64,000 nucleotides of DNA from Bispira polyomma (Eukaryota), in NCBI GenBank assembly GCA_965649765.1, contig OZ287751.1, positions 39,370,001 to 39,434,000 on the forward strand. Direction: 5' to 3'. Position 1 is the first letter of the stretch. The number at the start of each line of letters is the position of its first letter. The position numbers and the translations under genes were made by a program. Positions 5,162-17,380 of the stretch are shown piece by piece. Under the pieces are notes generated by a model that was given only the letters and a program-made list of their open reading frames with translations, was not told the origin of the DNA and made no database searches.

Positions 5162-5173
5162 CTATAATTCATC
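5162..5173 (-). CDS. Terminal coding exon GAT GAA TTA TAG (DEL*), completing KDEL
   Basis: Strong acceptor ttttttctgtatgtttcag; phase 0 after AAG (Lys); AATAAA at about 5075-5070. Confidence 0.85.
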   Translation of the reverse strand, partial: DEL

Positions 5174-8100
5174 CTGAAACATACAGAAAAAAATATATTT
5201 AAAAATCAAATGTCTGAGACAACAAACAAATACAAACAGTGGCCAAAATACCGCAGATGGCTTAATGAGACATGATTTGAGGTAAGCATTAAAATGTGAT
5301 CTGTTTTCCAAAATAGCCACCCAAATTGTAAAGTTGCATACTTGCAAGTGACTGTGCAAATATCTATTGGAGTGTAATCTTTTACTTTTTATGGGCTAAA
5401 ATGGACATCTGATACATTTTTACATGTATACAGAAGAACCTCTATTGGAGAGCAAGATTTTGTTCGAATAATTAAAGGTACGTGAAACAGAAAATCTATT
5501 TTTATGCCCAACAATAGGAAATAAATTTAGAGGAGTGAAAATATGCCATTAATGTAATATTTTGGATATAATAAATTCGAATAATGGAAAATCTTTGACA
5601 TTACATTGATGAATCTCCCTCTTGGTAGATCTTTAGACAGGGCTAAATTGTGAGAGGGGCTCCAACAATATCACACTTTCAAAAACAAAATTAAACTGAG
5701 AAAATGTTCATGAGCTTAGTTCACACAATAGTATTAAATGGATTATTGCAACGAAATTATTCTTTAATTTGACGAACTTTCAAAAGATAATCTTCTTAAT
5801 GCAATCATATGATGAAAATGCAATGTAAAGGCACACCATGCCCAGTTTATTATAGGAATAACACCCGGCAAAGCATGGTGTACGTAAAATTTTACCATGA
5901 TTCAAGGTTTAGGCCCTCGAAAGCAAAGCCTGAGTGGGTCTAGTCTTTGAAGAATGGTAAAATAATAATTATAAAATAATAAACAAGATAAAACTTATCT
6001 TAAATTTATAAAATAATAATCAGTTTCAGTCATATACGCACACAAACACTGACTGTTCCATCTTACTTGTGGTTTGCATTTGGTACTGTTATAACAGCCA
6101 TAAATATATGCAGAAATTTACCAAGGCTTTTGGCTAATCAGAATCGAGGACACAGTCATGTCATGTTACAATACAAAGTCTACTCACATGCGACTGCCTT
6201 GGCCCAAACTTAATTATGTGTATTACAATGATGTCACTGGAGGCACTCCTTGTCTATAAGGGCCACCTTGTGCGCTAAATATGGGCGATCTTTATGTTTG
6301 AATATGTAGGTATATAATTTTGTTTTTCATCCATCTTCTTCGTTTTGTAATTATCTCATTGCTAGAAGGCTTTGTATAAATTGTATTTTGTTATTGTTGC
6401 CTTATTGTGAATCAAATATGTTTCAACATATTATAAGGGCAATGCGTGTCTACTCAGTTTAATTCAAGAAGATAACTTTCGGAAGTTCTAATTACCTTTT
6501 CCTGAAAGTCTTCGTCTAAGTAATCTACGATTCCGTCCCCATCCTGATCCTGCTCTATATCCGGAATACCATCCCCATTTCTGTCTTCATCCATAAAATC
6601 TGGGATCCCGTCATTATCATCATCTGGATCCAAATAATCTGGAATGCCATCCTGTATACAAGAAACAATGAGTATAATGAGGTTATTTTACCCTCGTTGA
6701 TTTTATTTTCATATTTCACTACATGTATATCATTGACTGAAATAGAATTGAATAAATCTCTAAGATTTTGTTATTCTTTGATTTTGCGAGAGTTTTCACT
6801 ATGTACAATTTGAGGTAGGATAATAATTTCCATCATCTGTACCAAGATTTGTGGATTCAAAAAGATGAACTAAAATTTAAATGCTATAACAGCCTCTAAC
6901 ATTTAAATTAATATTGGCTTTTCAAAGTTGATCCAGGTTTATTGTATACTTACCTTTTGACAGTTGAGGATTATATTTCGATGGTTTCCGTTAAGTATTA
7001 CTTGAGAAGAAACACCGTTTTAATGATTAAAGTTAGATAATGGTAATGTATGCTCTTCTTTATTGGTGTAGTCAAAATTTAAATATAATACTAAATGTAA
7101 CACTAAATACAAAATGGTGTAGTGATGGTCCAGAAAGGTAGGCTACATTTTAGTAACTTCCTTCTAAGGGATTGAATTGCTTGACGGAATGATTTGGCCA
7201 CTGTGTCCAAGTAGGTGACATGCTCGCCTGGGAATGCAAAGATCCTGGGTTTCATCCCAGCATGGGACAACCATGCCGGTACAGCTAGATATATAGTGGC
7301 TTGGATGACCACTTAAAATGACAGTCCTCTGTTATTGGCTTCTACGGTTGCATACTATAATTAGGCACCTTAGGGACGTTGCTAAATTGTCATCCCAAAG
7401 TTTCTGTCTTCAGTTAGGAGAATGTCAGTTACTGGATGGCTGCATTTGTAAAGTCAGCCGGTTAAATAGCAATATAAATACCAGATCTGTACATCATCCA
7501 ATTTTCAGCCCATTTTTCTAATGCTAACAGGTCTTCTTGGAGCAAAAGTGCATCATTTACATTCCGTATTGGTCTGTATAGGAGGCAGACCTGAGACTTA
7601 ACACAATCTAGAAGGTCATTGATAAAGCAGAGAAAGAGAAGAGGCCCCAATACTGACCGTTGGGGGACACTTGAACTGACTGAAGCTTTAGTGGAAAACT
7701 CACTCTTTAGAACAACTCTTTGTTTTATATTTGCAAGGAAGGCTGTGACCCAGGAGTATGTTTCCTGGGTGATGCCCATGGCATATAATTTTGAGAGTAT
7801 TACGACTGACTTTATCAAAAGCCTTAGAAAAGTCCAGAATAACAATGTCCATTTGTTGTTTATTGTTGTAATGTTTAAATCTATCATTTATTGTTGTGAC
7901 GAGTTGAGTTTTGCATGAATGATGTCTGCGGAAGCCATGCTGGAATTTTGTGAGGATATTATGTTGATCAAGGTGATTTTGGATATGCTTACAAACAACA
8001 TGTTCCATGATCTTGCAGCATACACTGGTAAGAGATACTGGGCGATAGTTTTCTGTCGCATGTTTATCTCTCTTCTTGAAAATTGGTGATACATTAGCTT

Positions 8101-17100: not shown

Positions 17101-17380
17101 CCCTAACCACTAGACCACGGAGGATCAATAACTAACTACAATAAATATTTATTATTATTATTAAATCTTCATTTGAAACCCATTTATTATTTTACAGTAT
17201 TTGCACTTTATTAAAAAGCTGTGCATAAAACATGTAAGATTATTTTCTGAGTGAAATTAATTATACATATTAAAACAAAAATTTGTCAAGTAACATACCA
17301 TCTACATTTGGGTCTGCATTGTTTTTAACTGCCACTCCAGTCAGTAATAACAGGATCAAACATAGCTTCCAGTTAGCCAT
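5162..17380 (-). CDS. Spliced gene, join of 17299-17380, 13560-14428, 12597-12687, 11366-11571, 10187-10195, 6496-6651, 5162-5173: Asp-rich TSP3-like repeat protein with signal peptide and C-terminal KDEL (474 aa)
   Basis: All introns are GT..AG with matching phases (1,0,1,0,0,0). Total CDS is 1425 nt with no internal stop. N-terminus [22 protein letters not shown]; C-terminus ...DEDFQEK|DEL*. Confidence 0.88.
6496..6651 (-). CDS. Exon 6: [52 protein letters not shown]
   Basis: Acceptor tgtatacag, donor AAG|GTAATT; 52 codons; not in the ORF track (<60 aa). Confidence 0.92.
7400..8955 (-). mobile_element. CR1/L2-group LINE fragment (end of endonuclease plus RT) in intron 5 of the Asp-rich gene
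   Basis: [74 protein letters not shown]; several frameshifts. Confidence 0.9.
9826..10035. repeat. ~41-bp minisatellite (about 5 copies)
   Basis: acacagctttttgagatgtaaggtacatggtgattactaaa. Confidence 0.85.
10187..10195 (-). CDS. Candidate 9-nt microexon (Ala-Asp-Glu)
   Basis: attgtag|GCTGATGAG|gtaagg; phase 0/0; acidic codons match the protein's composition. Confidence 0.6.
10620..10985 (-). mobile_element. Degenerate L2-like LINE 3' fragment
   Basis: [12 protein letters not shown]...[15 protein letters not shown], closely resembling the 56138 fragment. Confidence 0.65.
11366..11571 (-). CDS. Exon 4: [15 protein letters not shown]...[10 protein letters not shown]
   Basis: Within ORF 11354..11662; acceptor tctgtccag, donor GAG|GTAATT. 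Confidence 0.92.
12241..12575 (+). mobile_element. tRNA-derived SINE (Deu/Nin-domain-like)
   Basis: A-box-like gcggttagag, B-box ggttcgattct, core cccttggacaaggtgctttac...ccaggcatataaatgggtacc. Confidence 0.7.
12597..12687 (-). CDS. Exon 3: [30 protein letters not shown]
   Basis: Acceptor cctcctcag, donor G|GTACTT; same repeat motif. Confidence 0.9.
13560..14428 (-). CDS. Exon 2: about seven 42-aa units ([42 protein letters not shown]), 21 DxDxDG-type motifs
   Basis: ORF 13545..14444 in the track; acceptor tttttattcaag, donor GAG|GTAGTC. Confidence 0.93.
15471..17057. mobile_element. Non-autonomous TIR DNA element (~1.6 kb) nested in a family-C SINE in intron 1 of the Asp-rich gene
   Basis: Left end gtaatgcaaaatactgactccc and right end gggagtcagtatattgcgctac; repeated subterminal atactgactccc motifs; the flanks rejoin into the SINE seen at 21705-22025. 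Confidence 0.8.
17299..17380 (-). CDS. Exon 1 of Asp-rich protein: signal peptide [27 protein letters not shown]
   Basis: ATG, hydrophobic core, donor G|GTATGT in phase 1 matching the exon-2 acceptor ttcaag|CA CTG GAT. Confidence 0.85.

Follow-up and report, generated by a model that had tools for sequence, protein, structure and literature searches.

Whether invertebrate cells might store calcium in the endoplasmic reticulum (ER) by means of a protein that differs from the known buffers is the question raised by a gene on the minus strand of a 64-kb window (the whole stretch of Bispira polyomma DNA that was analysed, 64,000 nucleotides with no N). To our knowledge, calcium buffering in the ER and sarcoplasmic reticulum (SR) of annelids and molluscs is poorly defined. 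The worm gene provides a concrete and easily expressed buffer candidate whose sites can be counted and whose architecture differs from that of calsequestrin, calreticulin or the CREC proteins. A preliminary description had proposed that a protein made of thrombospondin type 3 (TSP3)-like repeats was recruited as a calsequestrin-like store, either in muscle or in mineralising cells such as those of a mantle.

The seven phase-consistent exons of that proposal were all reproduced from the DNA, with AG at every predicted acceptor, GT at every predicted donor, and intron phases 1, 0, 1, 0, 0 and 0. Exon 1 (17299..17380, minus strand, as are all features of the gene) contains the start codon, with in-frame stops upstream, and specifies a signal peptide with a basic N-end and a Leu-rich core, which holds the sole Cys of the product, followed by the first mature residues and a phase-1 donor. 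Exon 2 (13560..14428) comprises 289 codons, or approximately 6.9 units of 42 amino acids, and carries 21 motifs. Exon 3 (12597..12687) adds two motifs, and exon 4 (11366..11571) four, followed by a short non-repeat stretch which is also present in a relative, L094, considered below. Exon 5 (10187..10195) is a 9-nt micro-exon candidate (ADE) in phase 0-0 and is optional, since skipping it keeps the frame and leaves a perfect motif; two more mini-exon candidates of this kind are located in the same intron. Exon 6 (6496..6651) has three to four motifs and ends in the K of KDEL, while the coding part of exon 7 (5162..5173) supplies DEL and the stop codon, the last intron thus splitting the signal as K|DEL. 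The predicted spliced product is 474 amino acids long, has no internal stop and terminates in KDEL. The first candidate poly(A) signal after the stop is AATAAA at 5070..5075 (minus strand), 87 nt past the stop codon, and further candidates (ATTAAA) lie at 5054, 4889 and 4450. In intron 5 (window 7460-8900) there is also a decayed LINE-type reverse transcriptase fragment on the strand of the gene (weak RVT_1 match).

The C-terminal KDEL, as previously claimed, is predicted by an acceptor with unusual properties. The AG|DEL-stop arrangement occurs only once in the 64-kb window, both strands counted, against approximately 0.002 expected by chance per 5 kb, and of the 161 candidate acceptors that lie within 6.5 kb downstream none has a better pyrimidine tract, although others tie with it. 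One of equal tract would open an alternative last exon at 3445, but this acceptor is the sole support for that exon, which was rejected. Contigs from three runs were genomic; those of two samples match the window letter for letter across most of exons 1–4, and the joints in these contigs (5,981 letters examined) are repeat-derived only. The gene is confirmed as real at the DNA level, with its splice junctions predicted.

The product contains 27 strict DxDxDG[IV]xD motifs, 30 if D/N is allowed, and 31 [DN]G[IV] cores, which makes the earlier count of about 31 a fair one; full-length DxDxDGxxDxxD motifs number 25 (strict) or 29 (relaxed). In exon 2 the 42-residue unit consists of three motifs spaced 13-13-16 with the linker DPDxRD, and each unit has 18–21 acidic residues, in agreement with the 20 of 42 originally given. 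The mature chain is 42% Asp, with a net charge of -202 and a mass of approximately 49 kDa. It is free of Cys and of N-glycosylation sequons and has no membrane segment, and repeats alone lie between the signal peptide and KDEL, as expected from the claims that Cys would be lacking after the signal peptide and that no other domain would be present. The signal peptide was predicted from hydropathy alone (9-mer mean 3.2). By sequence, therefore, with a signal peptide, no membrane segment and a KDEL-type end, the protein predicted from the DNA would be a soluble resident of the ER lumen. Six 126-nt units of exon 2 were compared with one another. They differ at third codon positions in 256 cases versus 102 and 94 at the other positions, with a pN/pS of 0.20, which shows that the protein sequence of the repeats is under purifying selection.

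Homology searches of the gene were run exon by exon, the exons being joined solely for residue counting. The profile search proposed in the preliminary description gave a match above the cut-off: Pfam TSP_3 (PF02412) scored 37.1 bits on exon 2 against a cut-off of 25 (E 2.5e-9), a match which covers only positions 1–27 of the 36 in the profile, that is, its Cys-free part. Weak PDB matches were to COMP and thrombospondin-1/2 (1ux6, 1yo8, 3fby), and to one bacterial OmpA-family protein; a single-sequence AlphaFold2 model was uninformative, with a pLDDT of 52. By its tandem motifs and the Pfam match, the predicted protein belongs to the TSP3-like motif class.

Its relationship to named families is another matter. 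Members of the thrombospondin superfamily combine EGF-like domains, type 3 repeats and a C-terminal L-lectin domain (PMC6526912). The worm protein shares with thrombospondin and COMP the tandem DxDxDGxxDxxD calcium-binding loops of PF02412, but it has no disulfide-forming Cys, NCP-type inserts, EGF, L-lectin or coiled-coil regions, consists of nothing but repeats between the signal peptide and KDEL, and uses the 13-13-16 spacing. True thrombospondin-type repeats are present elsewhere in the worm genome. With calsequestrin, sarcalumenin and the calreticulin C-domain it has in common a signal peptide, a luminal location (predicted here), strong acidity and a similar predicted capacity; it differs in the absence of thioredoxin folds, a lectin or an EHD-like domain. 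Calcium would be bound by a regular motif array and not, as in calsequestrin, by acidic surfaces formed on polymerisation. The calsequestrin model (PF01216), which describes three thioredoxin-like folds, did not match any of the exons searched, and no non-repeat region is long enough to hold them. The CREC proteins (calumenin, reticulocalbin) have a signal peptide, tandem calcium loops with a Dx[DN]xDG core and, in several members, a C-terminal xDEL. In contrast, the exons searched gave no EF-hand match in Pfam, and motifs repeated every 13 residues leave no space for the helices of a helix-loop-helix. The bacterial TSP3 repeats (PF18884) of surface and T9SS proteins are likewise Cys-free DxDxDG[IV]PD motifs, but they occur in multidomain, extracellular proteins with other spacings and approximately 10–35% acidic residues, whereas the worm gene has six introns.

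The preliminary description recognised no named family, and on the features tested the protein falls outside the thrombospondins, calsequestrins and CREC proteins; it is apparently part of an unnamed invertebrate family. That the family seems unnamed may be because acidic-repeat proteins are under-represented in databases, two such open reading frames (ORFs) being missing from those searched. Two leads to possible partial precedents exist. An acidic-repeat protein of Euglena gracilis (1992) reportedly has acidic Ca2+-binding repeats with a unit of about 23 amino acids and an ER signal peptide and is not known to carry a KDEL, and a protein of Echinococcus calcareous corpuscles is said to be built largely of acidic Ca2+-binding repeats. 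In the literature searched, these two papers lying outside the comparison, no description was found of an ER-retained protein made only of such repeats. While both the function class (luminal Ca2+ buffer) and the motif are known already, the pure-repeat, ER-retained form is apparently undescribed.

One full-length relative of the same design was found. Exon 6 alone, as a query of metagenome contigs, retrieved JGI contig Ga0170475_102185280 (L094), which contains an intronless ORF of 818 amino acids with non-coding sequence on either side. Its product has a signal peptide, 40–44 full motifs and a single Cys in the mature chain, and its basic tail closes with KAEL; both KAEL and KTEL occur as C-termini of human ER proteins (PMC2140024). 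Genomic pieces that correspond to the middle of L094 (L114–L118) are bounded by splice sites, which suggests that L094 derives from the mRNA of an animal. The DPDxRD linker is common to L094 (six copies) and exon 2 (five copies) and is absent from 11 other repeat proteins; among the twelve repeat proteins compared, the repeated 16-residue spacing of exon 2 recurs in L094 only. When a piece of L094 was used as a query, its best match in the worm genome was exon 2. Two points count against firm orthology: the order of modules differs from that of the worm gene, and by plain alignment score L094 is not set apart from GRP94 tails or other invertebrate repeat proteins. Orthologs ending in [KHR]DEL had been anticipated; a relative of the same design was found, its end being KAEL.

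The same motif was encountered in quite different proteins. A predicted Saccoglossus kowalevskii protein (P0404) has a Calsequestrin domain (E 3e-46) followed by 16 such motifs, this tail sitting where the acidic tail of calsequestrin normally is. Another animal protein (P0002) has a signal peptide, and its 17 motifs are flanked on either side by a thioredoxin-like stretch (weak Pfam support). Cys-free motifs are inserted in a loop of copepod claudin/PMP22-like proteins (P0001, P0039, P0059) and of a mosquito MFS_1_like protein (P0262, P0311), with 9–34 motifs per insert, and bacterial surface proteins dominate the database matches. Since the motif is found in claudin-like and MFS loops and on bacterial surfaces, it is not ER-specific. 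Large proteins with related repeats occur in the cestodes Taenia, Rodentolepis and Spirometra (L030; P0116, P0320, P0334); they keep some Cys and have no xxEL end, and possibly correspond to the calcareous-corpuscle Ca-binding protein of PMID 9268732.

Among the matches whose ends were listed in the homolog, representative and Atlas searches, none has a KDEL-like C-terminus. This is not to be taken as absence, because the libraries searched lack two repeat ORFs: the protein of L094 has no entry in them, and a 3048-aa repeat ORF on an ENA contig (L031) scored 3417 bits locally yet is missing from the representative results. Recruitment from thrombospondin is not shown by these data. The Cys-free 13-residue motif is widespread among the ER and membrane proteins of invertebrates as well as the surface proteins of bacteria, so the invertebrate pool of proteins with this motif is a more likely nearest source than thrombospondin.

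Study of the gene also revealed a putative conserved giant acidic extension of GRP94. The exon 2 search located a single other locus in the genome, at C4:64.628-64.684 Mb, where an array of approximately 270 motifs begins 6.7 kb past the HDEL exon of GRP94/endoplasmin (G000:C4:64603000-64684000; L020, L011–L017). Both the end of the penultimate GRP94 exon and the start of the first repeat exon, which reads E-x-C-x-x-C-x-R-K-L, are in phase 0. The arrangement is the same in Lymnaea stagnalis (L033:30840-43632), where an RDEL exon precedes an exon of 2,488 codons that starts in the same way, carries 157 motifs and terminates in KTEL. An NCBI gene model (P0401) joins GRP94 to the repeat exon, and an exon with a similar start is present in three further animal contigs. 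For the worm extension, no xxEL-ending last exon was found in this genome, and no description of such an extension was found in the literature searched. From its position and phase, the giant TSP3-like array looks like a conserved alternative C-terminus of GRP94 replacing the HDEL exon. Within this locus a three-exon cassette is present in approximately 10 tandem copies with near-identical introns (G000:C4:64628700-64669700), after which comes one uninterrupted frame of 2,161 codons.

Based upon the gene anatomy, the coding constraint and the relative of the same design, we consider it rather probable that the worm protein is a soluble, high-capacity Ca2+ buffer of the ER/SR lumen, and the same role would apply in annelids and probably in other protostomes. 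The signal peptide would direct entry into the ER, and KDEL would return escaped copies from the Golgi, an established mechanism applied here by analogy; some cells are able to secrete KDEL proteins (PMC9326092). The mature 49-kDa chain would consist of 25–29 complete DxDxDGxxDxxD loops in a row and would lack both a core and disulfides; it would probably be disordered when free of Ca2+ and compact at luminal Ca2+ levels. The thrombospondin motif forms binuclear Ca2+ sites (PMC3123361). If each loop held at most two ions, as in thrombospondin, a chain might bind approximately 50–60 Ca2+, which is in the range of calsequestrin (40–80 per molecule; sarcalumenin binds 35 and calreticulin 20–30; PMC8080761, PMC10000884). 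The effect of the protein would be a larger store of releasable Ca2+, the likeliest place being muscle or another cell type with a heavy Ca2+ flux. Splicing, ER localisation, Ca2+ binding and tissue are what we infer from the DNA.

The calsequestrin-like ER store of the preliminary description gains from the KAEL end of L094, the motif tail of P0404 and the KTEL end of the Lymnaea GRP94 exon. Two queries, the Pfam model and the Saccoglossus domain, did not detect calsequestrin itself in the worm genome, while calreticulin and calnexin were found. This lends weak support to a substitute role, since a divergent gene with short exons could escape detection. A wider proposal is that protostomes have an undescribed ER/SR calcium-storage system based on the Cys-free 13-residue TSP3-like motif, in a stand-alone KDEL/KAEL protein and in an alternative GRP94 C-terminus, which takes over from calsequestrin in those lineages that lack it. 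We regard it as possible, with a chance somewhat below even; if true, the giant GRP94 C-terminus would offer hundreds of Ca2+ sites.

The mineralising-mantle half of the original proposal is not upheld, the mitochondrial contig having the gene order atp6-R-H-nad5-F-nad4L-nad4, which matches conserved annelid blocks (PMC2667193); the host is probably an annelid. A related reading keeps the protein in the ER but places it in cells that secrete or store, such as oocytes, those of tube or cement glands, or those with mineral or metal granules. There it would load or sequester ions and keep Ca2+ or other cations soluble before export, and fast release in muscle would not be its task. The extreme Asp content and the cestode proteins with related repeats (P0116, P0320, P0334) are in its favour, as is a 1997 title which ties "a novel calcium-binding domain" to Echinococcus calcareous corpuscles (PMID 9268732, cited in PMC13484433). 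We nevertheless judge it unlikely, as the tie to calsequestrin and GRP94 points at the general or muscle ER and the host is not a shelled mollusc. Secretion as an acidic matrix protein, with the KDEL form minor or leaky, another last exon in use, or intron 6 read through, would be in keeping with the normally extracellular location of thrombospondin type 3 repeats. KDEL does hang on one splice: when the 6496 donor is read through, the frame stays open for 14 more residues and lacks KDEL, and the acceptor at 3445 equals that of DEL in its tract. Such a mainly secreted protein is nonetheless improbable, given that the DEL acceptor is very unlikely to arise by chance and has a joint-best tract, that the poly(A) signals after the DEL exon come before 3445, and that the KAEL of L094 is encoded within one ORF.

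The joining of the same repeats to GRP94 and to the thioredoxin-like P0002 might point to another role, that of a polyanion which assists chaperones or serves as a scaffold in the ER, holding basic clients or partnering GRP94, with Ca2+ binding purely structural. This appears quite improbable for a protein with no client-binding or catalytic domain and with the regular Asp spacing of a Ca2+ ligand motif, conserved under selection. Finally, if the exons were a repeat-gene copy that had fallen silent or decayed, they would hardly retain open frames, intact splice sites and a pN/pS of 0.20, nor would identity to contigs of two samples over most of exons 1–4 be expected; we give this very little credence. 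A buffer of the ER/SR lumen remains the preferred reading, and if it is correct, invertebrates may store ER calcium with a protein unlike the known buffers.

Several further features of the assembly were recorded. The mitochondrial genome (15.5 kb; G000:C75; L022, L023) carries cox1-3 and nad3 on one strand and the remaining genes on the other, an unusual distribution for an annelid. In the window, a broken retroelement at 32400-37100 (minus strand) includes reverse transcriptase- and tyrosine recombinase-like pieces and is DIRS/Ngaro-like by eye, with no Pfam support, and 41895-54213 holds satellite arrays whose periods are 52, 186 and 44 bp. Approximately 12 kb before the window, an open frame of 1,666 codons on the plus strand (L025:8169-10000 into L024) has a C2H2 zinc-finger-like start.
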